This document shows, in pieces, positions 30,804 to 46,540 of a stretch of 64,000 nt of DNA. Position 1 is the stretch's first letter; each line of letters begins with the position of its first letter. Under the pieces are notes generated by a model. The model saw only the letters and a list, made by a program, of their open reading frames with translations. It did no database searches and was not told the origin of the DNA. The DNA is from Obrimoposthia wandeli (Eukaryota): positions 3,410,001-3,474,000 of the forward strand of contig CDROCS010000506.1 in assembly GCA_977020255.1 (NCBI GenBank), in the 5' to 3' direction. The position numbers and the translations under genes are program-made.

Positions 30804-31682
30804 ATGTCTAAAATTAGATTTGATGAAACAGCTCGCAGTGAACGTTATTTTACCGCGACATTACTGTCACATTTATTAATGGTCAATGAGTTTGCAGGGC
30901 TGAAAGCGCTGTTCGAAAGCTTTGGTATTATATCTATTGATTATCTTTCAACTGATATTGAAATCGTTACCGAACTCGATCCTTTAAGAGATGGGGCAAA
31001 ATCGGAAGAACAAGACAAAGAAAATAAAGATAAAAAAATAGCGAAAATATTTAAAGAGAAAGGGCGGGTTGCTGTTCCTGATTTATTTCTAAGATGGGGC
31101 AATCAGATCCTCGTTATCGAAGCTAAGTTCTTTACGGCGCCAACAGGTGTAGATCTCGCTGAGCAAGTGGCTAAACAGCGTGAAGCTATTAAATTGGTAC
31201 TAGGCGAAACTCAATATAGTGAATGTGAAATTAAATATGCTTTGTTGACGGTTAATAAGTTGAAAGACGAAGATGGACTATTGTCTAAAATACCTCAACA
31301 TACGTGGACTAAAGTGATTGAAATATTGCGAAATACGTTAGGTGAAGAACATCAAAGTAACATTGATTACTGCTTTAAGATCCTCGAAAATGCAGTTAAA
31401 AGAAGTAAAGAAGAGCTAAGTCGTAATGTAACTGATTATCGTCTAATCGCTAATATAGGTGAATTACTTAAGGCGTTACCTGAGCTTATCGCCAGTGAAG
31501 AGTTATTCGTTGGTTATACTGGCGGGATTGCTGCATTAGCGCTCGCTGAGCTTTCGACTCTTGAGCAACGTAAACATTATAAAGTGTCGAGATTGAATCC
31601 GAACAGTAATTGGATCCGTATCGATGTTGTAATTAAGAAGTACTTGGATCTTAAACTAGCGAATGATTACAGCATTAGTTGA
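30804..31682 (+). CDS. Stand-alone PD-(D/E)XK nuclease-like protein
   Basis: VPDLFL...ILVIEAKF motif; AT-rich. Confidence 0.65.
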   Translation: MSKIRFDETARSERYFTATLLSHLLMVNEFAGLKALFESFGIISIDYLSTDIEIVTELDPLRDGAKSEEQDKENKDKKIAKIFKEKGRVAVPDLFLRWGNQILVIEAKFFTAPTGVDLAEQVAKQREAIKLVLGETQYSECEIKYALLTVNKLKDEDGLLSKIPQHTWTKVIEILRNTLGEEHQSNIDYCFKILENAVKRSKEELSRNVTDYRLIANIGELLKALPELIASEELFVGYTGGIAALALAELSTLEQRKHYKVSRLNPNSNWIRIDVVIKKYLDLKLANDYSIS

Positions 31683-31852: not shown

Positions 31853-32485
31853 TTATTTTGTTACTCTGATTAGTGTACTGCTATCGGTATGCGCCATTGA
31901 TTGACCGTAAATATCTAACATCGTATTTTGTGAATAAGTGAGTTTATTTTCTTCAATTTTGATGTTCATACTAAAGCCTGTTGTTGAGGCTTTTCTTGTC
32001 ATATATGAACCTTCAGCTATCCCTCGTGCTGGTGCAGTCAATGTCATTGTTTTACCTGCAACGCCTTCAGCGGTGACACAAGTAGTACGTGGTATGCAAA
32101 ATGAGTTGTATACCATTTGATTTTTAGCATCATAGATAAAATAACCACGTTGATCATGAAATTTAGATCCATCTGACTTTCTAAATACTTCTTGCTTGTA
32201 ATACAAAGCAACTAAGTATTGTTCGCTTGCATTCTGGGCATCAGCAGCTGCTTCAAACGTCATTGTTTCGAAAAAAGGACTCACTGCAAGAGAGCCTGCA
32301 CCTTGTTCAGATCCGACTTTTGCAGGGGCAACATCAACACCTGCTCCTTCCATTGTTTCCCAAGTTCCAACAAGCTGAGCGAGAGGGCCAAAATCCATCC
32401 CGTTAATGATATTTTCATTCGCAATTGTTGAAAAAGACATTGCTGATGCGAGGCCAAGTACAAGTAATTTTTTCATAAGTATCAT
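31853..32485 (-). CDS. Heme-binding beta-barrel (nitrobindin/FABP-like, DUF1794) protein, exported
   Basis: FGPLAQLVGTWE, GVDVAP, FHDQRGYF and a C-terminal His (AHTD); signal peptide. Confidence 0.7.
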   Translation of the reverse strand: MILMKKLLVLGLASAMSFSTIANENIINGMDFGPLAQLVGTWETMEGAGVDVAPAKVGSEQGAGSLAVSPFFETMTFEAAADAQNASEQYLVALYYKQEVFRKSDGSKFHDQRGYFIYDAKNQMVYNSFCIPRTTCVTAEGVAGKTMTLTAPARGIAEGSYMTRKASTTGFSMNIKIEENKLTYSQNTMLDIYGQSMAHTDSSTLIRVTK

Positions 32486-32801: not shown

Positions 32802-33194
32802 TTAAGACTCGACAGCGCCGCCACTTTCAACCCATTCCGCAAAACCGCCCGCTAGATTTTTAACTGGTGTTAGCCCCATATCTGCAGCTGTTTTCGCAGC
32901 ATAAAGTGAACGCAGGCCGCGAGCACAATAAAACACATAGGTTTTGTCTTGGTTAAAAATCTTATTATGGAAAGGACATGCTGAATCGATTAAAAACTCA
33001 AGCATGCCTCTCGGACAGGTAAATGCACCGGGGATCACGCCAAGAGTTTGTCGTTCTTCAGCTTCTCGGACATCGACAAACACATAGTTGTCATCGTTAA
33101 AAAGGGCTTTGGCTTCAGCTATCGATATATCGTCAACGACACGATAAGCTTCTTCTTCTAAGGCTTTAATACCTTTGGTGATAGTTTGTGGCAT
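32802..33194 (-). CDS. Single-domain rhodanese (sulfurtransferase)
   Basis: VDVRE, GVIPGA, PRGMLEF, active loop YCARGLRS and LAGGFAEW. Confidence 0.9.
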   Translation of the reverse strand: MPQTITKGIKALEEEAYRVVDDISIAEAKALFNDDNYVFVDVREAEERQTLGVIPGAFTCPRGMLEFLIDSACPFHNKIFNQDKTYVFYCARGLRSLYAAKTAADMGLTPVKNLAGGFAEWVESGGAVES

Positions 33195-33260: not shown

Positions 33261-34439
33261 TTATGCCTGTTCTATATCTATTGCTGATTTCAACAACGTG
33301 AGCGAAGCCTGAATTTGCGCTAACGGTGATGCAAAGTTCATGCGATAGAAGTTTTCATCGGGCTCACTAAACCAAGTACCTGGGGTAAGCGCCAATTTTG
33401 CTTGCTGTGTTAATAGCGATTTAAGTTGCGCGGACGTTAAGCCTAATCCGCTAAAATCAAACCAGATCTGATTCGTGCCTTCAGGTACAAACACTTTCAC
33501 TTGTGGCAGTTCATTGGCCATAAATTCGGTGATCCAATTACGGGTATTTTGGGTATAACTTAAAAACGCATCGAACCATGCTTGGCCGTGCTGATAAGCT
33601 GCAATAGTCGCGTTCGTGGTAAAGATATTTTCGTGGTCAAGTGACATAGAAACCACAGTGCTTTTGATCTTCTCGCGTAATACTTTGTTGTCACTGTAAA
33701 TATAACCATTCGAAATACTGTTCAAGCCAAAGCTCTTAGCTGGCGAACCAATAATCGTTAAACTGTTGTCATAATCGAATGAACTAATACTGGTGAATGT
33801 AGCATCGTCAAACACGATGTCGCCATGGATCTCGTCACTAATGATGAGGGTGTTATATTTCTTCGCTATTGCCACCAGTTGTTCTAATTCTGTTTTGTGC
33901 CAAACACGACCGACAGGGTTGTGTGGGTTACATAGCAACACCATTTTCACCTTGCCACTTTGCAGTTGTTTTTCAAAGTCGGCAAAATCCATAACATATT
34001 TATCATTGTCGATTTGTAACGTGTTGTTCACCGCTTTACGTCCTGCCGATTCAATTAAGCGGCGGAATTGATGATAGACCGGTGTTTGAATTAACACGCC
34101 ATCACCTTCATCGGTAAACTCGCGGATTAATAAGGCTATCGCGCTTAATACACCTGGTGCTGGCACAAAGTGGTCGGGATTCAGGTCAAGATTGTGACGG
34201 GCTTTATTCCATTGTGAAATAGCCTGGAACACCGTTTTAGAATCGAATTCGTATGAGTAAGTTTCGCGGCTAACCAGCTGTTGCATGGCTTGAGTTATCG
34301 GTGAGGCGATGGGGAAGTCCATGTCTGCAATCCAATAAGGGGTTACATCATCGGTGCCATAGACTTGCTTAAGCATATTACTGTCGTGCTTGATGAACTT
34401 GTTGTTAATGTCAGTCTGACTTGGTGTTAGTTTCAACAT
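33261..34439 (-). CDS. MalY/PatB family PLP C-S lyase (cystathionine/cystine beta-lyase)
   Basis: PYWIADMDF, LCNPHNPVGRVW, ISDEIHGD, SPAKSFGL and RMNFA. Start placed at ATG 34439. Confidence 0.9.
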   Translation of the reverse strand: MLKLTPSQTDINNKFIKHDSNMLKQVYGTDDVTPYWIADMDFPIASPITQAMQQLVSRETYSYEFDSKTVFQAISQWNKARHNLDLNPDHFVPAPGVLSAIALLIREFTDEGDGVLIQTPVYHQFRRLIESAGRKAVNNTLQIDNDKYVMDFADFEKQLQSGKVKMVLLCNPHNPVGRVWHKTELEQLVAIAKKYNTLIISDEIHGDIVFDDATFTSISSFDYDNSLTIIGSPAKSFGLNSISNGYIYSDNKVLREKIKSTVVSMSLDHENIFTTNATIAAYQHGQAWFDAFLSYTQNTRNWITEFMANELPQVKVFVPEGTNQIWFDFSGLGLTSAQLKSLLTQQAKLALTPGTWFSEPDENFYRMNFASPLAQIQASLTLLKSAIDIEQA

Positions 34440-34475: not shown

Positions 34476-34501
34476 GACGGAATTAAATAAAAAAAGACGC
34501 A
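34476..34501 (-). promoter_or_regulatory. Putative ECF (SigZ) promoter of patB-rhodanese
   Basis: Minus strand TGCGTC-N16-CGTC (TGCGTCTTT...CGTCAT). Confidence 0.65.
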
Positions 34502-34607
34502 AATTATTGTATTACTTCATTCGCTTTTAAACATTCACCCGTGATGTCTATTGGTTCCCATCGCAACGGTAGTCGTTGCAGCATCACGTTGCAGCAAGCA
34601 TTAATGG

Positions 34608-35159
34608 CTATGCATTACCCTTACATTTAGGTGAACTGTTGGGGTTTTTTCGTGAATAGTCGATGATACCGTTTTGATCTACTTCAATATCACAGCATGC
34701 CATCATTTGTTCGCGAAATTTGACTCTGCCTCTTTGTACACGGCTCTTGGCACCAGACAGCGATAAACCCAGTTGTTGGGCTATGTCTTTTTGTGAAACC
34801 CCTTCAAGCTCTGCTAAGCGCAGTGGGATGCCATATTTTTCTGGTAGCTCGTCAATCAAGGGGCGTAAACATTCCGCTAATTCTTCACGGGCTTCAATGC
34901 CTTCATCTTCTTCTTCGGCTACGAGATCGTCGGGTAATACTTCATAAGGTTGACGCTCTCGATAAAAGTCCATGATGGTATTGTGCGCAATCCGGTAAAG
35001 CCACCCTTTGAGGCTACCGCTTGATTTTAATTGATGCAAATTACTACTGGCCTTGATGTAAACATCTTGCAGAATATCATCGACAGCGTTTGCATCATCA
35101 ATGCGCTTGCTTACATAACCGCGCAGTTGCGCTTTGTGATTTTGCCATTCAGATAACAT
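34608..35159 (-). CDS. sigZ: ECF RNA polymerase sigma factor, SigZ type
   Basis: DDILQDVYIK, WLYRIAHNTIMDFYR, region 4 SQKDIA...LSLSGAKSRVQRGR and C-terminal CC (MMACCD). Confidence 0.88.
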   Translation of the reverse strand: MLSEWQNHKAQLRGYVSKRIDDANAVDDILQDVYIKASSNLHQLKSSGSLKGWLYRIAHNTIMDFYRERQPYEVLPDDLVAEEEDEGIEAREELAECLRPLIDELPEKYGIPLRLAELEGVSQKDIAQQLGLSLSGAKSRVQRGRVKFREQMMACCDIEVDQNGIIDYSRKNPNSSPKCKGNA

Positions 35160-35230
35160 ATTAATTGAGCCTTAATTTAATCGATTTTACGGTACCAATA
35201 GACAGGATACATGAAGCACCAAAAGACATG

Positions 35231-35256
35231 GACGGTGTAAATCATCAAAAGATGCA
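35231..35256 (-). promoter_or_regulatory. Putative autoregulatory ECF promoter of sigZ
   Basis: Minus strand TGCATC-N16-CGTC. Confidence 0.7.
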
Positions 35257-35301
35257 AAAAAATCACTACTTTTTTATATTTATTTTTAATCACCACAATT
35301 G

Positions 35302-35327
35302 TGCATCTTTTTTTATCCCAATACGTC
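35302..35327 (+). promoter_or_regulatory. Putative ECF promoter of tcyP-cdr
   Basis: TGCATC-N16-CGTC(TT). Confidence 0.7.
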
Positions 35328-35464
35328 TTCTCAGCAGACCTTCAAAGGAATTCGCCTCGCATTAATTGGCGTAATCAGAGAAGAAAATATTAAGTAGTCA
35401 TGAGGCGTTAGCGTAGGGCTTGCTGCATGAATACTGGAATTAACTACAAGTATTGGGGTTTACC

Positions 35465-36889
35465 ATGAGTTTACTATTAATTGCATTAATCGCCATATTT
35501 ATGAGCTTTTATGTTTTGTTATCTCGCTTGAAATCAAGTAAGAAAAGTTTTAATTACCGCGTGCTCACAGCGTTATTCGGTGGCCTGCTATTTGGTGGGG
35601 CGATACAGCTTACAGTGGGTGTTAACAGTGATGTAAATCTGCAATTTGCTGAGCTTATTTCAATTTTTGGTAGTGGCTATGTCAAGTTATTACAAATGAT
35701 TGTTATCCCATTGGTACTTGTTGCCATGACAGCCTCCATCATGAATGTAGAAGGTGATGGCGCATTATCAAAAATAGCACCCAAAATCATCGGCACACTC
35801 ATCTTTACCGTCGTTATTTCTGCGTTGGTTGGTATTGCGAGTATTTATGTGTTTGATATCGATGCCAGCAGCCTAGTCAATGTGATGGGCAGTAACAGTG
35901 CAATAGAGGCGCGTAACAGTACCTTACACTCAACGCAGCATCTGGTGGCAAACAACAGCATAAGCAATCTTTTATTATCAGTCATCCCTGCGAATGTTTT
36001 TGAAATGCTAACCGGATCAGAAAGAACTGCAACCTTGTCTACCGTGTTATTCGGTATGTTTTTGGGCTTTAGTATTCTGCAGGTTAAAAAACGTAAACCT
36101 GAGAAGGTGCAGAGTTTTGTTGATTTCATTAATGCAGCAAAAGAAGTGGTGTTATCAATGGTTCGCGAGATCCTTAAGCTCACACCTTATGGCGTATTTG
36201 CGCTGATGACAAAATTCATGATGAGCAGCGACCTTTTTGCCTTGGCTGAAATGGGACGTTTCTTGATCGCAAGTTATACCGCTATCGGCGTCATGTTCTT
36301 GGTTCATCTGGTATTAGTTGCACTGTTTGGCTTATCTGCGAAAAAATTCGCACAAAAAATCTGGCCTGTTTTAGTGTTTGGTTTTGGCTCGCGTTCAAGC
36401 ATGGCTGCAATTCCACTGAATATAGAAACGCAAACGCAGCGATTGGGCGTTGATGAAGAAACTGCCAACATGTCAGCGACGTTTGGTACCAGCATTGGTC
36501 AAAATGGATGTGCAGGCATCTACCCTGCAATGCTCGCTATTATGGCCGCACAAGTGATGGGTATTCCTGTTGATTTTGGCTTTGTCTTACAGCTTGTCTT
36601 TGTTATCGCCATTGCCTCATTTGGTATTGCGGGTGTCGGCGGCGGTGCAACATTCGCTGCGGTTGCAGTGCTTACCATTATGGGTTTAGACATCACGGTA
36701 GTGGCTATTTTAGTCTCTGTTGAAGCCTTAATCGATATGGCGAGAACAGCACTTAATATCTCAGGTTCTATGCTGTCTGGTGTCATCACTGCTAAGCGTA
36801 ATGGTTCGCTGAATACTGAGTTGTACGCTTCGTCAGAAACGCTTGCTGACCGCGAACGTCATCATTCAACTAACGAAATCAACGCTTAA
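35465..36889 (+). CDS. tcyP: L-cystine:cation symporter (TcyP/YdjN, DAACS family)
   Basis: GYVKLLQMIVIPLV, RSSMAAIPLNIETQ, GQNGCAGIYPAML, GVGGGATFAA and IDMARTALN. Confidence 0.85.
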   Translation: MSLLLIALIAIFMSFYVLLSRLKSSKKSFNYRVLTALFGGLLFGGAIQLTVGVNSDVNLQFAELISIFGSGYVKLLQMIVIPLVLVAMTASIMNVEGDGALSKIAPKIIGTLIFTVVISALVGIASIYVFDIDASSLVNVMGSNSAIEARNSTLHSTQHLVANNSISNLLLSVIPANVFEMLTGSERTATLSTVLFGMFLGFSILQVKKRKPEKVQSFVDFINAAKEVVLSMVREILKLTPYGVFALMTKFMMSSDLFALAEMGRFLIASYTAIGVMFLVHLVLVALFGLSAKKFAQKIWPVLVFGFGSRSSMAAIPLNIETQTQRLGVDEETANMSATFGTSIGQNGCAGIYPAMLAIMAAQVMGIPVDFGFVLQLVFVIAIASFGIAGVGGGATFAAVAVLTIMGLDITVVAILVSVEALIDMARTALNISGSMLSGVITAKRNGSLNTELYASSETLADRERHHSTNEINA

Positions 36890-36926
36890 CAGTCTTGAAC
36901 AAACACTTTATACGAGAATAAACATA

Positions 36927-38324
36927 ATGAAAATTGTAATTTTAGGTGGTAGCGCAGCGGGCATGAGCTTTGCTGCCAAATACAAAAGAAACCAACCAGA
37001 AAATGAAGTTATCGTAATAGAAAAACGCAGCTACCTTTCATTTGGCGCGTGTGGTTTGCCGTATTTTGTTGGCAATCAATTCGATGATACCGAGAGAATG
37101 ATCTCTCGGACACCAGCTCAAGCGATGGATGCGGGGATCGATGTTCGTATCAATACAGAAGTTGTTGCTGTCGACCATATCGCTCAATTGGTTACGATGA
37201 AAGGTGCCAATGGACAAGAGCAACTCCATTACGATAAATTAATTATCGCAACGGGGGCTCGTCCGATTGTGCCCGATTTTAACGACTATTCGGCGGCTAA
37301 TAATAAAGAAACATACAACCCTGAGCATGTTTATACGCTAACAAGCATGGAAGATGGTATCGCCGTCAAACAAGCTTTACAGCATCAAGACAAAAAGAAG
37401 GTTGCCATTATTGGCGCTGGCTTTATTGGTTTGGAAATGTTCGATGCCGCGTATGACTTAGGCAAAGCAGTAACACTGATTGAGCGTGAACCACATATAA
37501 TGAGTCGGCAATTCAGCCCTGAAATGATTGATGTGGTAGAAGATGCTATTCGAGACACCGGCACTGCGTTAATGACGGGGACAGAGGTTAAGTACATTCG
37601 CGATAATGGGCGTGGCGGTTATCTGATCTCAACCCGTACTTTATCAACGAATAGCCCCTCAACAAGCACTCCCTCGGAACAACAAAGTGCTGATGTGGAG
37701 GCCGATATCATCATTTTATCATTAGGCTTTAGACCGAATACAGAACTGTTTGATTTGCCCAAACTCAGTAACGGTGCACTGCTCGTTGATCAGTTTGGGG
37801 CGACACCGATGGCCAATATTTATGCTGTAGGCGATTGCGCCACCGTTCACCATCTTATCTTAAATGAACCGGTATATTTGCCGCTCGCGACGACGGCGAA
37901 TAAGCAAGCACGTATGATGGCTGACAAACTAGCAGGCAAGGAAGTGTTTTTAAATGGCTTCTTAGGGGCGGCATCGTTAAAAGTATTGGACTTTGAACTG
38001 GCGAGTACAGGCGTTTCACAATCGCTTGCCGAGGAATATAAGATCCCAGCTACCACATCAGTGATCAATGATAAAAACCAAACTGATTATTATCCAGGGC
38101 AGGAAGATATTAAGATTAAGTTGGTTTATCACCCTGAATCTAAGGTTTTGTTGGGGGGAGAGATAATCGGTAAAAAAGGCGCGATAGGGCGACTTAATGC
38201 GCTCAGTGTCGCGATGACCGCTAAGATGACCACCAACCAATTAGGGTACTTGGACTTTAGCTATGCGCCACCCTTTGCGAGAACATGGGATGCGTTAAAT
38301 GTTGCGGGTAATGTAGCGAGGTAG
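36927..38324 (+). CDS. CoA-disulfide reductase / NADH oxidase-peroxidase family flavoprotein
   Basis: GGSAAG, single redox Cys in SFGACGLPY, ATGARP, GAGFIGLE, YAVGDCA and DFSYAPPF. Confidence 0.88.
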   Translation: MKIVILGGSAAGMSFAAKYKRNQPENEVIVIEKRSYLSFGACGLPYFVGNQFDDTERMISRTPAQAMDAGIDVRINTEVVAVDHIAQLVTMKGANGQEQLHYDKLIIATGARPIVPDFNDYSAANNKETYNPEHVYTLTSMEDGIAVKQALQHQDKKKVAIIGAGFIGLEMFDAAYDLGKAVTLIEREPHIMSRQFSPEMIDVVEDAIRDTGTALMTGTEVKYIRDNGRGGYLISTRTLSTNSPSTSTPSEQQSADVEADIIILSLGFRPNTELFDLPKLSNGALLVDQFGATPMANIYAVGDCATVHHLILNEPVYLPLATTANKQARMMADKLAGKEVFLNGFLGAASLKVLDFELASTGVSQSLAEEYKIPATTSVINDKNQTDYYPGQEDIKIKLVYHPESKVLLGGEIIGKKGAIGRLNALSVAMTAKMTTNQLGYLDFSYAPPFARTWDALNVAGNVAR

Positions 38325-38371
38325 CCGAAACCATTAATCATGTACGTTATCGTTAATTTTTTGTATTTTTT

Positions 38372-38396
38372 TGCATCTTTTCTGATTTTTTCCGTC
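38372..38396 (+). promoter_or_regulatory. Putative ECF promoter of the gshA-ABC operon
   Basis: TGCATC-N15-CGTC(TT). Confidence 0.65.
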
Positions 38397-38424
38397 TTCA
38401 TTATTAAAGCCGTTTAAGTGAAGT

Positions 38425-40038
38425 GTGAAAATGATAAATACTGAAATAAAATACTCTGAAATTGATGTGGTTTCTTTCTTGAGTAAAGACAATGTTAAAG
38501 CCTCTCTGGTTGATATCCGCCGTGGTATCGAAAGAGAGCTAGTCCGTACAACACCACAAGGTTCGCTTTCTGCATCGCCGCATCCTAAAGCGTTTGGATC
38601 TGCTTTGACGCATCCGAGTATCACAACGGACTTCGCCGAAGCGCAATTAGAATTGGTTACACCTGCAATGAATGACAGGCAGGCTATGTTTAAAACGCTG
38701 GGTAATTTACATCATTTTGTTGCGACTCATATGCCAGCGAATGAAACCCTGTGGGGAGCGAGCATGCCGCCAGTGCTACCAGATGAAAGCATGATCACGA
38801 TTGCTGACTACGGTAGCTCAAATGCAGGTCAGCTGAAAATGCGTTATCGCCATGGTTTGGCGAACCGTTACGGCAAGAATATGCAGTTAATTTCTGGTAT
38901 TCATTACAATTTTTCGCTTCCTGAATCGTTTTGGAAAGCGTTGCACAGCTATACACAAAACCCCGTAGAGCTAAGTGAATTTATCTCGGAGCGTTACTTT
39001 CACCTCATTCGTAATGTGAGCCGTCATGGTTGGGTGATCCCGTACTTGTTTGGTGCCTCACCTGCCGTCGATCACAGCTACAACCCCGTAAATGAGCATA
39101 AGCTCGATAAGCACGATGATAAAACCCATTACCTGCCTTGGGCGACTTCATTACGCCTGAGTAATATGGGATACAGTAACAGTGAGCAGTCGTCGCATCC
39201 GGTGAGTTTTAACAGCAAATTGGCATTTTTAACCGACCTGCACCAAGCACTGACAAAGCCAAGTGAGCGCTACAAACACCTTAATACTGAGAAGCAACTT
39301 AACGCTTCTGTCTTGCAACTTGAAAATGAGTTGTACGGTTTAGTGCGCCCAAAAATTGTGAGTGAGGAACAGCGTCCTTTAATGGCAATGTGTCATCACG
39401 GTGTGCAATACATCGAGCTGCGTAGCCTAGATAATAATCCTTATTTACCACTGGGGATCAGTGAAGAGCAAAGTCATTTTTTGGATATCTTCCTAACTTA
39501 CTGTGCGCTGGCACCAAGTGCTGACATTACCGATGAAGAACAAGTTTTAATTGCTCGCAGGCAGGAATTGGTTGCTACTCAAGGACGTAAACCGGGCTTA
39601 ATGCTACCCACTTTACAAGGAGAACGCTCCTTAGTGGCACTTGGCGAGGAACTGTTAGCGGCGATGAATCCGGTTGCGAATATGTTTGACAGTGCCTTTG
39701 CTACGGATGTTTACGCCAAGGGCGTTGCGCAAGAAAAAACTAAGTTTAGTAACGCTGATCTGACGCCATCGGCGAAGGTATTGACTGATATGAAAAAATA
39801 TCACCTTAGCCATACGGCTTTTGTGCAACAACTTTCTGATTTGCACATGAAGCAACATGTTGAAAACGCGATTGAGCAAGAAGACATGGATAACTTGATA
39901 ACACTGGCATCGGGATCCTTGCTAGCTCAAGCGGAAATGGAAGCGCAGCAAGAGGTCAGTTTTGACCAATTTATCCAACAGCATAACCGCTTGCAGTGTG
40001 ACGGTGAGCAGCAGAAGGTAACGGTTAATTACTCATGA
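38425..40038 (+). CDS. gshA: Glutamate--cysteine ligase
   Basis: RRGIERE, TTDFAEAQLELVTP, SGIHYNFS, SLRLS, QLENELYGLVRPK and YIELRSLD. Confidence 0.92.
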   Translation: MKMINTEIKYSEIDVVSFLSKDNVKASLVDIRRGIERELVRTTPQGSLSASPHPKAFGSALTHPSITTDFAEAQLELVTPAMNDRQAMFKTLGNLHHFVATHMPANETLWGASMPPVLPDESMITIADYGSSNAGQLKMRYRHGLANRYGKNMQLISGIHYNFSLPESFWKALHSYTQNPVELSEFISERYFHLIRNVSRHGWVIPYLFGASPAVDHSYNPVNEHKLDKHDDKTHYLPWATSLRLSNMGYSNSEQSSHPVSFNSKLAFLTDLHQALTKPSERYKHLNTEKQLNASVLQLENELYGLVRPKIVSEEQRPLMAMCHHGVQYIELRSLDNNPYLPLGISEEQSHFLDIFLTYCALAPSADITDEEQVLIARRQELVATQGRKPGLMLPTLQGERSLVALGEELLAAMNPVANMFDSAFATDVYAKGVAQEKTKFSNADLTPSAKVLTDMKKYHLSHTAFVQQLSDLHMKQHVENAIEQEDMDNLITLASGSLLAQAEMEAQQEVSFDQFIQQHNRLQCDGEQQKVTVNYS

Positions 40039-41813
40039 ATATACTTTGGAAATTACGTGGCTATATAAAAATGTTTGCTCGGCAGTACATTATCGCCATT
40101 TTGGTACTGCAAATCGTCGCCTTGTTAAACCTGTTACCGTCTTGGTTGATAGGTCGGATTGTTGACAGTATTAGTGCTGGGGAATTAACTACGCGTTTAT
40201 TACTTATTCACCTCGCTGGCATTTTACTTTCTGCCCTTGCTATGTATGGCTTGCGGTATGTTTGGCAAAGCAGACTGTATGGTGCATCGGTTGCGATTAC
40301 CAAGGTGATGCGCAGTGAACTGTTTCATAAATTCACCGTACTTTCGCCATCATTCTACTCTCGCCGTAGCCCTGGTGATTTAATGGCGCATGCGACCAAT
40401 GATCTTAATGCGGTAGAAGAAGCAACCGGTATGGGCATCATGACGTTTGTGGACTCTTTGATTGCGGGTTTTACCGTAATTTTGGGCATGATTTTGGTTG
40501 TTAGTGGCGAGCTTACCGCGGTTGCTCTTTTGCCGTTTCCTCTGTTGGTCTACATTACGCATCGATATGGTACCAACCTGCATAAAGCCTTTGGCCGTGC
40601 ACAAACGACCTTTTCAAATTTGAATGAAGAAACTCGAGAAACTGTTTCTGGTATTCGTGCCGTTCACTCGCATGGTATCAATCAACGTCAGGAACAGCGT
40701 TTTGGTAAAGTATTGGACGATACGTTGGATGCAAACTTGTCGGTGGCTAAAGTAGACGCTGCGTTTATTCCAACGATTCAACTGTTTTACGGTTTGTCAT
40801 TTGTTATTTCACTTGGTTATGGTGCTTTGCTGATTAGCCAAGGCAACATTACCGTGGGACTGTTTACAACGTTTACGCTTTATCTTGGTCAGTTGTTGGG
40901 GCCATTTATGCAATTCGGTTGGCAGTTCAATGTATTTCAACGAGGCAGCATCTCATGGCAACGGTTGGAAAGCCTTTTCTCGGAACAACCAGAAGTGTTG
41001 GAAGGGAAAGACACTTTACCTAAGGATGCAAACGCGAATATAGCGATCAATATTAAATCGTTTACGTATCAAGGCGCAAATCGACGTGCGCTACAAGACA
41101 TCAAACTGGATATTCCTGCAGGAGGGTTAATCGGTATCACAGGCCCTACTGGCGGCGGTAAAAGTACCTTGTTGCAACTGGTATTAAGGCAATTCCAATT
41201 GGACTCGCAATCAAGTATTCGTATTGATGGGCATTCGATTGACAGCCTGACCTTTGATTCGATGCGTAGCAAAATGGCATGGGTACCGCAAAAGCCATTT
41301 TTGTTTTCTGGCACTATCGCGGAAAACATCGCATTAGGTAAACCGAATGCTTCAGCGGATGAGATTGCTCATGTTGCTGAAATGGCGGGCATCACAGATG
41401 AAATTGAAGCCATGCCTGAGGGATTCAATACTGTACTGAGAGAGGGCGGAACCAATCTTTCTGGCGGTCAGAGACAGCGACTTACTCTCGCCAGAGCTTT
41501 ACTGTCTGACGCTGACATTCTGCTGCTCGATGATCCGTTCAGTGCACTAGACATGAAAACGGAAGTGATTGTGCGCCGGAACCTGAAAAAGCATTATGGA
41601 CATAAAACGATGGTATTGATTACGCAGCGATTACCAAACTTGATCGAAGCAGACCAAATTCTGGTGTTGAACGAAGGCCAGATTGAAGAACGAGGATCAC
41701 ACCATGATTTAGTCGCAAAGCAAGGCTGGTACTCGTTGGTTTATCAACGTCAAAGTCAGCTGGGTAAAGCAATCAAAGAGAAAGCAACACTTACAGGAGA
41801 ACACTATGCGTGA
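40035..41813 (+). CDS. Type IV ABC exporter half-transporter A (MdlA/SmdA-like)
   Basis: TM domain, GDLMAHATND, Walker A GPTGGGKS, LSGGQRQR and degenerate Walker B LLDD; start overlaps the gshA stop. Confidence 0.9.
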   Translation: MNILWKLRGYIKMFARQYIIAILVLQIVALLNLLPSWLIGRIVDSISAGELTTRLLLIHLAGILLSALAMYGLRYVWQSRLYGASVAITKVMRSELFHKFTVLSPSFYSRRSPGDLMAHATNDLNAVEEATGMGIMTFVDSLIAGFTVILGMILVVSGELTAVALLPFPLLVYITHRYGTNLHKAFGRAQTTFSNLNEETRETVSGIRAVHSHGINQRQEQRFGKVLDDTLDANLSVAKVDAAFIPTIQLFYGLSFVISLGYGALLISQGNITVGLFTTFTLYLGQLLGPFMQFGWQFNVFQRGSISWQRLESLFSEQPEVLEGKDTLPKDANANIAINIKSFTYQGANRRALQDIKLDIPAGGLIGITGPTGGGKSTLLQLVLRQFQLDSQSSIRIDGHSIDSLTFDSMRSKMAWVPQKPFLFSGTIAENIALGKPNASADEIAHVAEMAGITDEIEAMPEGFNTVLREGGTNLSGGQRQRLTLARALLSDADILLLDDPFSALDMKTEVIVRRNLKKHYGHKTMVLITQRLPNLIEADQILVLNEGQIEERGSHHDLVAKQGWYSLVYQRQSQLGKAIKEKATLTGEHYA

Positions 41814-43623
41814 TGCAAAAATGAATCAAGCGAGTGACGCTTCTTTGTTTCGTCGCCTTATGGCTTACTCATTACCACATAAAATGCGTTTTGTGGGGGC
41901 ATTTATGATGCTTGCCATTGCGATCAGTGCTGAGATGGCGATCCCTTGGATCGCTAAGATTATTATTGACGAGGTGATTATACCTCAGCAGTTTGAATGG
42001 CCGTACTTAGCGTCGCTGCTTGGGTTGATCATCTTCGCCTATGTGATCTCTGGATTGTTTAACTATTTGCAGACGGTGTCGTTTAGTCATAGCGCTTTGT
42101 TAATGGTCAATGATGTTCGAAAACAGTTGTTTAATCACGTATTGAACTTTCCTATCAGTGTATTTGATAAACTCGCTGCGGGTAATTTGGTGTCTTACAT
42201 TACTAATGACACCGAAGCTTTACGCAACATGTTTGTGTCGACGATCCCAACCATTATGCAGGGCAGTTTACGTATTGGTGCGATTTTTATCGCTATCTCG
42301 TTATTGGACTGGCGTTTGATGTTGTTGAGTCTGGTGTTGATCCCAATACTGTTGCTGACAATGCATGCTTATCGCAAGATCTCGATGAAAGTGTTTGATG
42401 GCATCCGTGTGCAAATTAGTAACATCAACGGCCAGATTAACGAGTCTTTACAAGGCATGGTATTGATTCAGGCGTTTCGCCAAGAAAAAGCGTTCACTGA
42501 AAAATTTGAGCAAGAGAACAAGCGTTGGTTTGATTTCCGCGAGAAGTCGATTGCAATTGACAGCCTGATGTTGAACCCGTTAACGCGTTTGGTATCGACG
42601 CTTACTGCTGCGGCTATCGTTGGATGGTTTGCTGGTGAATCACTTAGTGTTGTCGTTGAAGTCGGTACTTTGTATGCGTTTTTAAATTATATCGAACGCT
42701 TCTTTGACCCGTTCCGCCAGTTGTCTATGGAACTGCGTAAATTGCAGGTAGCAACCGTGGCATCGAAACGCATTTTTGAGTTATTGGACGATGACTCGGC
42801 ACATCAGTCGCCATCAATGAACATTGTGCCGCTATCAACGCAGCATGATATTGAGTTTCGCAACGTCAACTTTAGCTACGAAGAAGGTAAACAGGTACTG
42901 TCTAATGTGAGCTTTACCGCGAAGGGCGGGCAATCTACAGCGATTGTGGGTCATTCTGGTAGTGGTAAAAGTTCAGTGGTTAACTTATTGATGCGCTTTT
43001 ATCAGCATCAGCAAGGTGAGATATTGGTAGCTGGTCAGCCGATAGGATCACTCCCTGAGGCTCAACTTCGCAAGCTGTTTGGTTTGGTTTCACAAGATCC
43101 AATTATATTCAGCGGTTCGGTGTTGGATAATATTGATTTATCACATGCAATACCAAACAAAGATAAAGCCATACTCGCGGCAAAGCAGGTGAAAGCGCAC
43201 AAGTTTATTGAGCGCTTAACTAATGGTTATGAACATCAGCTTAGTCATGGCGGCGCTTCACTTTCGGTTGGTGAAAAACAGCAATTGGCATTGGCGAGAG
43301 CGATCACTCATGATCCGAGTATTTTCTTACTGGATGAAGCCACTGCTAACATAGACAGTGATACCGAAGAGGCGGTTAAAGAGGCGCTCGAGGGCATCCA
43401 AGATGGCAGAACCGTCATCACGGTTGCGCATCGTTTATCGACTATTCAGAATGCAGATCAAATTCTGGTGATGAATAAAGGCAAAATCGTGCAAAGCGGG
43501 ACGCATGACGAGTTGATCGGCCAAGATGGCGATTATCGTGACTTGTATCTTGCACAAAAAACGCAAGAAGAGAACGAACATCAGAACAGTCTGCTTGGTT
43601 TAGCGCAAGCAACCGCAGCCTAG
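41806..43623 (+). CDS. Type IV ABC exporter half-transporter B (MdlB/SmdB-like)
   Basis: Walker A GHSGSGKS, LSVGEKQ, LLDEATANID and AHRLST. Confidence 0.9.
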   Translation: MRDAKMNQASDASLFRRLMAYSLPHKMRFVGAFMMLAIAISAEMAIPWIAKIIIDEVIIPQQFEWPYLASLLGLIIFAYVISGLFNYLQTVSFSHSALLMVNDVRKQLFNHVLNFPISVFDKLAAGNLVSYITNDTEALRNMFVSTIPTIMQGSLRIGAIFIAISLLDWRLMLLSLVLIPILLLTMHAYRKISMKVFDGIRVQISNINGQINESLQGMVLIQAFRQEKAFTEKFEQENKRWFDFREKSIAIDSLMLNPLTRLVSTLTAAAIVGWFAGESLSVVVEVGTLYAFLNYIERFFDPFRQLSMELRKLQVATVASKRIFELLDDDSAHQSPSMNIVPLSTQHDIEFRNVNFSYEEGKQVLSNVSFTAKGGQSTAIVGHSGSGKSSVVNLLMRFYQHQQGEILVAGQPIGSLPEAQLRKLFGLVSQDPIIFSGSVLDNIDLSHAIPNKDKAILAAKQVKAHKFIERLTNGYEHQLSHGGASLSVGEKQQLALARAITHDPSIFLLDEATANIDSDTEEAVKEALEGIQDGRTVITVAHRLSTIQNADQILVMNKGKIVQSGTHDELIGQDGDYRDLYLAQKTQEENEHQNSLLGLAQATAA

Positions 43624-43725
43624 GCCTCATATGTGGGTAATGCGGCAATCGCACCATAACGAAAAAGCCAAAGTGGAAGACCACTTTGGCGATGCTAAAT
43701 TTATTCGATTATTGTTTTTTGAACA

Positions 43726-45195
43726 TCAGTTGATTAATGTTAGAGAGTCGAGAACGCCTTTACCACTGTGAATGCCGCCTTCATTTTCACTGGCTGGCTT
43801 GCTGCGAATAAGGTAACCGGCATAACCATCGAGTTCTGTAACTGGAACGCCATCGTAATAAGCGGTAAACAAACCGATTTCGCTAACAAGGTCATCGACC
43901 TGTACTTGTGCGTTATCGCGGACCGTTATCGCTGGTACCTCGCGTTCATGCGGGTACAAACGTGACATTAACGCCCATGCGTCATATTCTTCTGGGTTGA
44001 GTTCATTCAATTTATCGCTGATGTCCTCACCAAAAACGCAGTGACCACCACCTTCACCTTGATTCTTTAATACCCACTCTTGTTTATCAGCTTGGGTGTT
44101 AAACCAGGTTATCGTTTCTGGGTTTATAGGCTTCATATCTGCTAACACACTTTTTACCAATTCAGCTTCTACTAGGTTAAGTCCCCAGCGAGCATACTCT
44201 TCGGCAGGCATTACTGTCAGTAGCATCTGCATGGTTTTACTTGTTGCAAGCTGCTGGCTGAACGTAGCATTAACTGCAACATGATGCTGCTCGATAAACA
44301 ATCTTGTTTGACTTAATGTCTGGCAACATACCGGTTCATCTCGCGCTGGAGAGTAGTAATCAGAATACTGATAACCTGCTCGTAGGTACACGACATCGAT
44401 AGCTCCAATGTCTGCTAACATTAAGCGCTGGTTGTCACCAGTTGATAGCTGTGTACTAAGCTGCTCAAACGTACGTCGTACTGTGCGTATACCTTTATGC
44501 TGTAACGCGACTTCAAGTAAATGTTGGTCATAAACATTATCTTCATTTTCTTGGACAACCATCAAGAATGTCGGTTTTGGTTGGGTTGCATCGGTTGTAA
44601 ACGCCGCTTGGACTTTTATCGCTGCTTGGGCAATACCATAGGCGAGCTGTTCCAGTCCTTGATTCTCTGCTGGTGTCGATAAGTTATCTTCAGACCATTC
44701 ACGGTAAACGTTTGGCCATTGATTTTTCATATAAGCGTGAAATTCTGTCGCGCGTTGGCCAAAGGGCGCCATACCGGCAGCAATACCGTTGAACTCAATA
44801 ACTTTGGCACCGTGTTGACGGTCATCCATAAAGTCGGTGCGCATTAACAGTAACGGTTTTCGAGCGGGTGTAAGCCGATGTTCACTATTACCATGAGCCT
44901 GTTGGTGCAGAGATAATAAACGACCGAAAAACGGGTCGGCTTTGGCCATATCTTGTAATGACGATTGTAGAAAATCATGATCTTCCGAGACATTGTTTAT
45001 CAGCTTAGTAATAAGTGGCGTCACTTTGCGTAAATGTTGGAACACTTTACGCTCCATCATCATTGGCGCAATACTAAAAGGGCAGTGTCTGGCGGTGTTA
45101 TCTGCTTGACGAAACGCGACACCATGCATAATGGCCCATTCAGTTGCATCTTGAATCACTTGTTGTGGGATCATTAAGGTTGTTTTGGTATTCAT
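43726..45195 (-). CDS. Glutathione synthetase of the eukaryotic (GSS/GSH2) type
   Basis: RTDFM, IEFN, YLRAGY, VLKNQGEGGG, SEIGLF, GYLIRSK and EGGIHSGKGVLDS parallel eukaryotic GSS motifs. Start placed at ATG 45195 after GGAG. Confidence 0.82.
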   Translation of the reverse strand: MNTKTTLMIPQQVIQDATEWAIMHGVAFRQADNTARHCPFSIAPMMMERKVFQHLRKVTPLITKLINNVSEDHDFLQSSLQDMAKADPFFGRLLSLHQQAHGNSEHRLTPARKPLLLMRTDFMDDRQHGAKVIEFNGIAAGMAPFGQRATEFHAYMKNQWPNVYREWSEDNLSTPAENQGLEQLAYGIAQAAIKVQAAFTTDATQPKPTFLMVVQENEDNVYDQHLLEVALQHKGIRTVRRTFEQLSTQLSTGDNQRLMLADIGAIDVVYLRAGYQYSDYYSPARDEPVCCQTLSQTRLFIEQHHVAVNATFSQQLATSKTMQMLLTVMPAEEYARWGLNLVEAELVKSVLADMKPINPETITWFNTQADKQEWVLKNQGEGGGHCVFGEDISDKLNELNPEEYDAWALMSRLYPHEREVPAITVRDNAQVQVDDLVSEIGLFTAYYDGVPVTELDGYAGYLIRSKPASENEGGIHSGKGVLDSLTLIN

Positions 45196-45282
45196 TATTC
45201 TCTCCAATAAACATGCCGTACTGAATACGTCTAATGTTTTATTTACCACTTGTTTATCATGAATTTGTTTTTATTTTAATAA

Positions 45283-45308
45283 GACGAAAAAATGTTAGGA
45301 AAGATGCA
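45283..45308 (-). promoter_or_regulatory. Putative ECF promoter of the glutathione synthetase gene
   Basis: Minus strand TGCATC-N16-CGTC(TT). Confidence 0.7.
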
Positions 45309-45450: not shown

Positions 45451-46017
45451 ATGAACCCAACCTTCATTAAGCAATTAGAAAAAAATGAATTCACGGCCTT
45501 AGATATTGATATATTAACTCGTGTTGCAAAACCATTATTGCTTCCCGCTCAGCATATATTATTGAACCAAGGCGAAGTTGCCAACTCGTTTTATTTTATT
45601 TTAGAAGGTACCTGCCATGCTTCTTATATTACTCAGCAAGGTAAGCAATTTAGCAAAGAATTCTATTGGGAGCAGGATTGGATAATTGGCTTTGAATCTC
45701 TAGTAAGGGGACTTCCTTCGCCATATTCGGTGGAAACTTTAACAGCAACTGTATTACTTTGTTTACCCATATCCTCTGTTCAGGAGTGGCGAAATCAGTC
45801 ACATCCTTTATATATTAAGTTACTAGAAACACAACTAATGTATAAAGAGAATAAAGAGCGCTTCATGTTACATACGCCCAAAGAGCGATACGAAATCTTC
45901 TGTCGAGACTTCCCCCTGCTACTTACACGGTTAAATGATTACCAGATTGCAGCTTACCTTGGGATCACTCATGTCAGCTTAAGTCGTATTAAAACGAGAA
46001 TAAAAGATAATAATTAA
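45451..46017 (+). CDS. Crp/Fnr family regulator (cNMP-binding domain)
   Basis: LLNQGE, FILEG, ERYE and C-terminal HTH IAAYLGITHVSLSRI. Confidence 0.85.
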   Translation: MNPTFIKQLEKNEFTALDIDILTRVAKPLLLPAQHILLNQGEVANSFYFILEGTCHASYITQQGKQFSKEFYWEQDWIIGFESLVRGLPSPYSVETLTATVLLCLPISSVQEWRNQSHPLYIKLLETQLMYKENKERFMLHTPKERYEIFCRDFPLLLTRLNDYQIAAYLGITHVSLSRIKTRIKDNN

Positions 46018-46087: not shown

Positions 46088-46540
46088 ATGATCACTTGGC
46101 AAACGCTTCCTTTTAATAAGCTCTCCACATTACAATTTCATGAGCTTATTAAGCTAAGAGTAAATGTTTTTGTTGTAGAACAGACTTGCCCTTATCCAGA
46201 GTTAGATGGCAAAGATATCATTGACGATGTATATCATCTTTTAGGATCTGAAAACGACGAGATTATTGCATGTGCAAGATTACTCCCTGCAGGGATATCT
46301 TATGAGAATGTCAGTTTAGGGCGGGTTGCGACAAAAGAAACAGCTCGTGGACATGGTCTTGGCCATCAATTGGTTATAGAAGCACTTAAGCAATGTGAAC
46401 AGCATTGGCCAGGTAAGACTATTGATATTGGAGCACAAGAATACTTACAAACTTTCTACGAACAGCACGGATTTAAACCTATTTCTGAAGTGTATATGGA
46501 AGATGGTATCCCGCACATTGATATGCGTTTAAAGAAATAA
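46088..46540 (+). CDS. elaA: ElaA-like GNAT acetyltransferase
   Basis: LRVNVFVVEQTCPYPELDG, SLGRV, ARGHGLG, AQEYL and EDGIPHIDM. Confidence 0.85.
   Translation: MITWQTLPFNKLSTLQFHELIKLRVNVFVVEQTCPYPELDGKDIIDDVYHLLGSENDEIIACARLLPAGISYENVSLGRVATKETARGHGLGHQLVIEALKQCEQHWPGKTIDIGAQEYLQTFYEQHGFKPISEVYMEDGIPHIDMRLKK

Follow-up and report, generated by a model that had tools for sequence, protein, structure and literature searches.

Which promoters does SigZ, a sigma factor of the extracytoplasmic function (ECF) type, recognize, and what do the genes behind them do? SigZ reportedly received its name in 1997, and we know of no work since then that has established its promoter, its regulon, or its signal. 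We address this question in a 64,000-nucleotide stretch of DNA (the window: positions 3,410,001 to 3,474,000 of contig CDROCS010000506.1, GenBank assembly GCA_977020255.1, deposited under Obrimoposthia wandeli), which carries a sigZ gene at 34608-35159 on the minus strand; all window coordinates count from its first letter. The closest homolog of the encoded protein is SigZ of Moritella marina, with 92% identity, and we therefore take the window organism to be a Moritella-like marine gammaproteobacterium. The original prediction for this locus held that five matching ECF promoters define a compact SigZ regulon whose output is thiol acquisition and glutathione supply. Our follow-up suggests, as the best overall explanation and a likely one, that autoregulated SigZ promoters drive the supply of cysteine and glutathione, probably in response to thiol-reactive stress.

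A predicted promoter motif in the window and at sigZ in other genomes

The motif in question, TGC[AG]TCTTT-N12/13-CGTC, was said to lie upstream of each transcription unit of the cluster and in the correct orientation. A regular-expression scan of both strands of the 64-kb window returned exactly five matches, which reproduce the claimed positions and strands, and no further copies elsewhere in the 64 kb. All five are intergenic, and each is aimed at the gene named for it. On the minus strand, CGTC of the putative promoter of the patB-rhodanese unit (34476-34501; TGCGTCTTT...CGTC, a 26-mer) ends about 37 nucleotides (nt) before the patB start codon (ATG 34439), that of the candidate autoregulatory promoter of sigZ (35231-35256) 72 nt before ATG 35159, and that of the predicted promoter of the glutathione synthetase gene gshB (45283-45308) 88 nt before ATG 45195. 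On the plus strand, the corresponding distances are about 138 nt for the tcyP-cdr unit (35302-35327; ATG 35465) and 35 nt for the gshA-abcA-abcB unit (38372-38396; ATG 38431), whose 25-mer site has a spacer one base shorter. The sigZ and tcyP promoters stand back to back and are divergent, with 45 nt separating their -35 elements. A short T run lies 5' of each of the five sites. Since spacers and flanks vary from site to site, the five are not duplicates of a single repeat, and simple arithmetic (12 fixed bases plus one purine, two spacings, 128,000 positions) gives a chance expectation of only about 0.01 to 0.03 matches.

We also ran over the window a two-block position weight matrix trained solely on sites from other genomes, so that the five sites were found by a matrix that had never seen the window. 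They score 32.6 (patB), 30.2 (gshA), 26.5 (tcyP), 24.3 (gshB), and 23.2 bits (sigZ), compared with 8.2 bits for the sixth-best position and maxima of 4.1 to 19.5 bits in 20 shuffled windows. A weaker candidate at 31247-31271 (minus strand) was rejected: it scores 7.8 bits, inside the null range, and lies within an open reading frame (ORF). The five sites have the anatomy of ECF promoters, which are bipartite with a spacer of 15 to 17 nt; here TGCRTC is followed after 15 or 16 nt by CGTC, a CGT-containing -10 element, and the whole points at a gene. A scan of 32.5 to 45.6 kb for sigma-70 promoters and terminators gave no enrichment over shuffled sequence, and an Rfam scan of 31 to 47 kb at a permissive threshold gave nothing relevant, with no known riboswitch in the tcyP leader. 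This leader (35328-35464) is unusually long (some 130 nt counted from the predicted start) and includes a tiny ORF (ATG AGG CGT TAG). The spacer between sigZ and patB (34503-34607) contains an imperfect hairpin, CGCAACGG...CGTTGCAG, which may end sigZ transcription.

For comparison across genomes, an alignment of SigZ homologs served to fetch 80 sigZ loci from contigs chosen at one genome per species, each locus with flanks of at most 10 kb on either side. As the regulon claim would have it for SigZ neighborhoods elsewhere, the motif turns up in 77 of these, and the loci that bear it span Pseudomonadota, Nitrospirota, Acidobacteriota, Thermodesulfobacteriota, and low-GC lineages. It is located either a short way 5' of sigZ or ahead of the next gene, right behind the sigZ stop codon. 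No motif was found in L081 and L083, two short metagenomic contigs with distant homologs and flanks of less than 1 kb only. Within 1.36 Mb, made up of the 80 loci and 32 kb of the window, there are 116 strict sites where about 1 is expected. Their density is 0.21 per kb at distances of up to 3 kb from sigZ and 18-fold lower, 0.011 per kb, farther away, so that the background frequency is low in these genomes as well as in the window.

The strict sites are uniform in build. The 26-nt form accounts for 113 of the 116, with the window gshA promoter among the three 25-mers, and the next start codon follows at a median of 42 nt (interquartile range, 36 to 53). Crude ORF calling in high-GC loci made 14 sites seem to fall within ORFs and some genes for arsenite methyltransferase (arsM) seem remote from their site; on inspection, these proved to be mis-called ORFs. 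A count of all 6-mers within 150 nt either side of sigZ, made blind to the motif, ranked TGCGTC, GCGTCT, and CGTCTT at the top in both regions. The extended consensus consists of an A/T-rich stretch, ttTGCGTC(T/C)TTTT, N11, and cCGTCT, that is, ttTGCGTCTTTTT-N11-cCGTCT.

The sole gene common to all motif loci is sigZ, and this is our main argument that SigZ reads the motif. Autoregulation, likewise part of the original prediction, is suggested by the site in front of the window sigZ gene and by counterparts 30 to 77 nt 5' of sigZ in 21 other loci; no motif precedes sigZ in the arsM clade described below or in Aliivibrio fischeri-type loci. Together, these sequence data make the assignment of the promoters and of the regulon to SigZ very probable.

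Predicted target genes in the window and across the SigZ family

The thiol and glutathione output claimed for the regulon recurs in related genomes. The first gene after the motif is sigZ in 21 cases, arsM in 21, patB in 13, gshA in 12, a glutathione S-transferase (GST) gene in 6, eukaryote-type gshB in 4, and tcyP in 3, with two cases each of another SDF transporter gene and of genes for a CysE-like acetyltransferase, an ArsP/SaoE-like permease, and an Ahr-like aldehyde reductase. Of these, patB, gshA, gshB, tcyP, SDF, GST, and CysE-like genes, and rhodanese genes besides, follow the motif in marine gammaproteobacteria. There, the gene families of the window recur in other orders, with a motif of its own for each unit, in Aliivibrio, Photobacterium, Vibrio, Shewanella, Psychromonas, Moritella dasanensis, Alginatibacterium, and Thalassomonas. 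With P for the motif, the arrangements include P-sigZ-gshB; P-patB(-rhodanese); sigZ, P-gshA-ABC-ABC-gshB; cdr-tcyP-P divergent from P-sigZ; and rhodanese-P divergent from P-patB, and reshuffled units are exemplified by M. dasanensis (L002), Aliivibrio sifiae (L010), and Photobacterium (L016 and L055). The divergent sigZ/tcyP layout of the window recurs in L010, L016, and L023, but there the sequence that separates and flanks the promoter elements is not conserved. Because the units have been rearranged and yet the motif is kept at each, these loci match the prediction of a regulon. Aliivibrio fischeri ES114, which is genetically tractable, carries the system as sigZ-P-gshA-ABC-ABC-gshB, so that the predictions can be tested quickly.

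Individual loci depart from the window in other ways. In M. dasanensis (L002:9899-13364), gshB follows sigZ in one unit, whereas the window gshB has its own predicted promoter, and the 8-kb block of the window comprising tcyP-cdr and gshA-ABC-ABC is not found within 10 kb of sigZ. A second SigZ paralog is encoded 3' of gshB in Photobacterium (L016:17925-19722) and Vibrio (L035:10001-11742). It adjoins a gene for an Ahr-like Zn-dependent aldehyde reductase with a variant motif, TGCGTCTTATGCC...CCGTC, and paralog-specific promoter variants may exist.

Outside the marine gammaproteobacteria, a second target stands out. In a maximum-likelihood tree of 70 SigZ proteins, the loci linked to thiols and glutathione form one clade (43 rows; support, 99/95). 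The predicted target in its sister clade (17 rows; support, 100/96) is arsM, the identity of which is firm (NF008823, 372 bits against a cutoff of 263), and deeper branches are arsM linked too. In several arsM loci, sigZ lies within an ars cluster, in the order arsD-arsA-acr3-sigZ-P-arsM (L074:6458-11405, L058:6425-11407, and L042:722-5967); loci of this type belong to betaproteobacterial and other members of the arsM clade, among whose organisms are Gallionella, Thiobacillus, and Acidithiobacillus ferrivorans. The absence of a motif 5' of sigZ in these clusters suggests that sigZ is transcribed by read-through from the ars operon and that SigZ then drives arsM.

The family as a whole is large: searching 1.8 billion representative proteins with a profile yielded 1,467 clusters (50% identity; E ≤ 1e-30). 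Among its distant low-GC members, the motif lies ahead of a glyoxalase-family/ThuA gene pair divergent from sigZ in L082 and 29 nt 5' of sigZ in L084 and L085. In L086, it comes right after the sigZ stop codon, ahead of a DUF2703 gene, and in L087 and L088, a one-mismatch variant follows the stop codon. One distant member has a gene for bifunctional GshF divergent from sigZ. Because the motif is also found at distant low-GC members, the promoter appears to be a property of the entire SigZ family. The predicted targets are consistently enzymes that handle thiols or thiol-reactive toxicants, and since arsM is the commonest target family-wide, thiol-reactive toxicant stress is a likelier signal than simple thiol supply. 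A very divergent SigZ-like paralog (about 25% identity; tail ...Q/ECx...VCCF) is encoded next to an ArsP/SaoE-like permease gene at L012:2592-3158 and L057:15401-15931. Its likeness in the Rhodius 2013 library is E. coli ECF24_1034, and the L012 permease gene carries a SigZ-type motif (3454-3479).

Within the window, NCBIfam and Pfam profile scores uphold the identities first given to the target genes, in the case of tcyP by its SDF family and the names of Atlas clusters only. The patB unit encodes a PatB-family C-S lyase of the cystathionine/cystine beta-lyase type (33261-34439, minus strand; TIGR04350, 342.8 bits against a cutoff of 340) and, as its second gene, a rhodanese-domain sulfurtransferase (32802-33194, minus strand; Pfam PF00581, 63.5 bits), which adjoins patB or cdr in the related loci L002, L010, L035, and L055. 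The mechanically called patB ORF opens at TTG 34502, inside the promoter; the true start is most likely ATG 34439. On the other side of sigZ, tcyP encodes a TcyP-like cystine symporter of the SDF/DAACS family (35465-36889, plus strand; Pfam PF00375, 289 bits), whose nearest Atlas clusters bear the name L-cystine transporter TcyP (score, 0.98). It is followed by cdr, the gene for a flavoprotein of the coenzyme A-disulfide reductase family, a disulfide/persulfide reductase (36927-38324, plus strand, start ATG 36927; NF007123, 589.7 bits against a cutoff of 458).

The glutamate-cysteine ligase gene gshA (38431-40038, plus strand; TIGR01434, 489.3 bits against a cutoff of 393.3) heads a unit with two ATP-binding cassette (ABC) exporter half-transporters (40035-41813 and 41806-43623, plus strand). 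The ABC genes overlap gshA and one another, so translational coupling of all three is likely. The best solved relative of the pair in the PDB is the heterodimeric multidrug exporter BmrCD (YheI; E = 1.8e-123), and the substrate of the pump is probably glutathione or glutathione conjugates; the pair could not be assigned as CydDC, Atm1, or SmdAB, every NCBIfam match being under its cutoff. Convergent with abcB lies gshB (43726-45195, minus strand), for a eukaryote-type glutathione synthetase (Pfam PF03917, 203 bits; PF03199, 75 bits). Its ORF covers 43726-45249 and most likely starts at ATG 45195. The product, of the eukaryotic ATP-grasp type, falls under the NCBIfam equivalog cutoff (TIGR01986, 247.7 against 329.8 bits), and its PDB relatives are the glutathione synthetases of potato, yeast, and human together with the homoglutathione synthetase of soybean. 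Between abcB and gshB, a GC-rich hairpin (43667-43690, unstranded; a 10-pair stem and then a T run) is a terminator candidate, the sole real-looking one in the scan of 32.5 to 45.6 kb.

Three genes without a SigZ motif flank the cluster. These encode a protein with a cyclic nucleotide (cNMP)-binding domain (45451-46017; 188 amino acids), a GNAT acetyltransferase (46088-46540; 150 amino acids), and, just past the rhodanese gene, a THAP4-like heme-binding beta-barrel protein of the nitrobindin type (31853-32485, minus strand). The cNMP-binding and GNAT genes flank the M. dasanensis cluster (L002) too, and a GNAT gene is found 3' of gshB in the Aliivibrio fischeri loci L008 and L013. A functional tie of these two genes to the cluster, e.g., through acetylation of cysteine conjugates, is pure speculation.

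The SigZ protein, a proposed mechanism, and its alternatives

The window protein passes both NCBIfam equivalog models for SigZ (TIGR02959, 229.9 bits against a cutoff of 168.65; NF007215, 244.1 bits against 212), and its homologs carry Pfam PF04542 and PF08281, which places them among the ECF (group 4) sigma-70 factors. In an AlphaFold2 model (mean predicted local distance difference test score, 81.5), helices at residues 2-69 and 86-155 make up sigma-2 and sigma-4, followed by a beta hairpin (residues 156-170) and a disordered tail; the top Foldseek matches are SigH, SigL, AlgU, RpoE, and SigW. Cysteines occupy marked positions in this fold: Cys97 lies in the first sigma-4 helix, the pair Cys155-Cys156 closes sigma-4 and opens the hairpin, and Cys178 lies in the tail. 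Among 70 SigZ homologs, Cys97 is conserved in 69, Cys155 in 64, and Cys156 in 69, and one or two C-terminal cysteines are usual. When we inspected the tails of 149 further family representatives, most read CC-x-Φ-E...CxxC.

No anti-sigma gene lies beside sigZ, either in the window or in the loci from other genomes. The 106 nt to the patB promoter contain no ORF, no ORF for a ZAS anti-sigma factor (HxxxCxxC) of the kind found in SigR-RsrA adjoins the gene, and no small conserved co-transcribed gene is found next to sigZ across the 80 loci. As expected of ECF238, SigZ appears to have no anti-sigma partner, and it has a short (about 20 amino acids) Cys-containing C-terminal extension, with residues 155-183 carrying CC...C. 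Placement of the window SigZ in ECF238 goes through Bacillus subtilis SigZ, which is ECF24_69, or ECF238 subgroup 9.

In the mechanism that we favor, RNA polymerase with SigZ would read the five promoters, with TGCRTC and the ensuing T tract as the -35 element and CGTC, 15 to 16 nt on, as the -10 element. Transcription would start about 7 to 9 nt past CGTC, and SigZ, reading its own promoter, would create positive feedback. The induced products would import cystine (TcyP), reduce disulfides or persulfides (Cdr-like flavoprotein and rhodanese), cleave C-S bonds (PatB), synthesize gamma-glutamylcysteine and glutathione (GshA and the eukaryote-type GshB), and export thiols or their conjugates through the heterodimeric ABC pump co-transcribed with gshA. 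Without an anti-sigma factor, SigZ would be gated by its own Cys97, Cys155-Cys156, and C-terminal cysteine(s), as in CorE-type relatives. The trigger is probably thiol-reactive stress, for instance exposure to arsenite-like metalloids, soft metals, or electrophiles, or else disulfide/persulfide stress; the cell would then rebuild its thiol buffer and remove conjugates. That the cysteines act as an on-board sensor of such stress is a tentative proposal, which may prove right nearly as readily as wrong.

A broader version of the sensor proposal is possible, and we put it forward with greater reserve. SigZ-type factors might be one-component sensors: the vicinal Cys pair, together with Cys97 and the C-terminal Cys or CxxC, would bind arsenite-like metalloids directly or undergo modification by thiol-reactive compounds. 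Such factors would be a sigma factor counterpart of ArsR. The link to arsM, with several loci inside ars operons, looks widespread and possibly ancestral, and in the marine gammaproteobacteria, this sensor and its promoter would have been rewired to a second, inducible route to glutathione that employs a eukaryote-type synthetase and an exporter of conjugates.

Of the alternatives, the one that survives best accepts the SigZ promoters as real and denies that SigZ is a sensor. Its cysteines would be structural, holding zinc or something similar, and control would act on the transcription of sigZ, through an ArsR-type or other regulator or through read-through, and would be amplified by autoregulation. 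We regard this as rather unlikely. Although the CC...CxxC tails equally resemble a structural Cys4 zinc site, the characterized factors CorE and CorE2 are activated through their Cys-rich extension (PMC8999054). A transcriptional cascade fits the ars clusters in which sigZ has no motif of its own (L074, L058, and L042), but no other regulator gene is conserved beside sigZ across loci, and the window sigZ has its own SigZ-type promoter only, with no convincing sigma-70 promoter. A gene driven only in this way would therefore need a posttranslational gate against runaway feedback.

It is improbable that a different ECF sigma factor, either a SigZ paralog encoded elsewhere or a member of a similar group, reads these promoters and that sigZ is merely one of its targets. 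Most loci have only one SigZ-family gene, although L016 and L035 each contain two in a single locus with the motif nearby. An ECF18-type consensus, GCATCC / CGTAT, partly resembles the motif (PMC13492112); against this, sigZ is the one gene shared by 77 loci from several phyla, with the motif within tens of bases. We give still less credence to the possibility that a conventional DNA-binding regulator, repressor or activator, uses the motif as its operator. A conserved intergenic motif by itself cannot tell a promoter from an operator, but this one is asymmetric, neither palindrome nor direct repeat, and always aimed at the downstream gene; its fixed spacer of 15 to 16 nt between hexamer and CGTC and its median distance from the start codon are the anatomy of an ECF promoter; and no transcription factor gene co-occurs with it, solely that of the sigma factor. 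Finally, an origin of the five matches by chance, or as fragments of a repeated mobile element, is ruled out by the exact scan with its minute chance expectation, the matrix scores, the differences in spacers and flanks, and the conservation of the motif in unrelated genomes.

Some points weigh against the SigZ account itself. The dependence of the promoters on SigZ is read from co-localization, and where two sigZ paralogs lie by the same motif, as in L016 and L035, either may read a given promoter, and cross-talk between them is possible. In the arsM clade, with sigZ in ars operons and without its own motif, induction could be purely transcriptional and the cysteines a structural metal site. 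Because the PDB relatives of the gshB product include soybean homoglutathione synthetase, this enzyme might make a glutathione analog instead of glutathione. The regulon had also been called compact; the set of five units stands within the 64-kb window, and compactness may not hold beyond this local part.

What the SigZ account offers is a set of concrete predictions. The window and the 77 related loci give a sharp consensus, and the long-unknown SigZ promoter and regulon are now directly testable; the sole promoter prediction tested for ECF24 failed in a large synthetic-biology screen. The targets are coherent, comprising cystine import, disulfide/persulfide reduction, a C-S lyase, and glutathione synthesis and export and, elsewhere, arsM, GST, glyoxalase-family, and ArsP-like genes, and the conserved cysteines are a concrete sensor candidate. 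If the cysteines do act as a sensor, SigZ would give both arsenic methylation and inducible bacterial glutathione synthesis a new route of regulation, and a well-insulated sigma/promoter pair would be added to the toolbox.

Comparison with known systems

B. subtilis SigZ belongs to ECF24, now part of ECF238, which merged ECF24 and ECF44, and its function has barely been studied (PMC7826278, PMC8999054). Like the window protein, it has no anti-sigma factor, and it is of the same length; both have a cysteine ahead of sigma-4 and a CC pair immediately behind it (Rhodius et al. 2013 supplement), whereas B. subtilis SigZ lacks the C-terminal cysteine(s). In the same supplement, B. subtilis SigZ is ECF24_69, with a predicted promoter, Pecf24_up69, on which neither ECF24_69 nor ECF24_1034 had an activating effect in E. 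coli (fold change, about 0.97). The sequence of Pecf24_up69 differs from the present motif. The motif is absent from the Pecf24_up69 fragment of the B. subtilis sigZ region, and sigZ may therefore not be autoregulated in this organism. In the literature that we searched, we found no functional study of a proteobacterial SigZ and no ECF sigma factor tied to arsM, ars operons, or gshA. The consensus and targets of the SigZ group are not known to have been established previously; the ECF Hub or the supplement of the 2021 classification may hold a predicted motif for ECF238 subgroups.

ECF238 members have no anti-sigma factor and are probably regulated through a Cys-containing C-terminal extension, as has been shown for CorE and CorE2 (PMC7826278, PMC8999054). 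These two factors of Myxococcus xanthus, formerly in ECF44 and now in ECF238, also act without an anti-sigma factor and bind metals (Cu and Cd/Zn) through a Cys-rich extension (PMC8999054, PMC7826278). CorE-type factors need for their activity a CxC within the linker that joins sigma-2 to sigma-4, where SigZ has the single conserved Cys97 and no CxC; SigZ is therefore not of the CorE type, though it may work similarly. Their targets differ as well, in that CorE controls metal efflux genes and the window SigZ would control cysteine and glutathione genes.

The cysteines also invite comparison with arsenite-responsive repressors. As(III) is bound by Cys95-Cys96-Cys102 in AfArsR and by Cys15-Cys16-Cys55 in CgArsR (PMC8470949), so that both proteins, like SigZ, combine a vicinal CC pair with another cysteine, the third, located in a flexible C-terminal tail. 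Whereas As(III) releases ArsR, a repressor, SigZ would be a sigma factor. Together with the arsM link, the likeness of the vicinal cysteines makes direct sensing of metalloids or thiol reagents plausible; As(III) binding by SigZ would be pure inference from this analogy.

In Streptomyces, SigR-RsrA is an autoregulated ECF sigma factor system that responds to thiol-oxidative or electrophile stress by turning on the synthesis of the thiol buffer and the supply of cysteine. It may be regarded as the closest functional analog of the proposed SigZ output, a resemblance of function only. In structure, the SigZ model comes closest to sigma factors of the SigH/SigR type. SigR, however, is held by the zinc-containing anti-sigma factor RsrA, no gene for which adjoins sigZ, and its promoter consensus, of the GGAAT...GTT type, differs from the SigZ motif. 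An ECF sigma regulon is a known kind of system. What is new here is the consensus and the targets for the SigZ group and the cross-phylum link to arsM and to glutathione genes, which provides a testable hypothesis for a sigma factor of long-open function.

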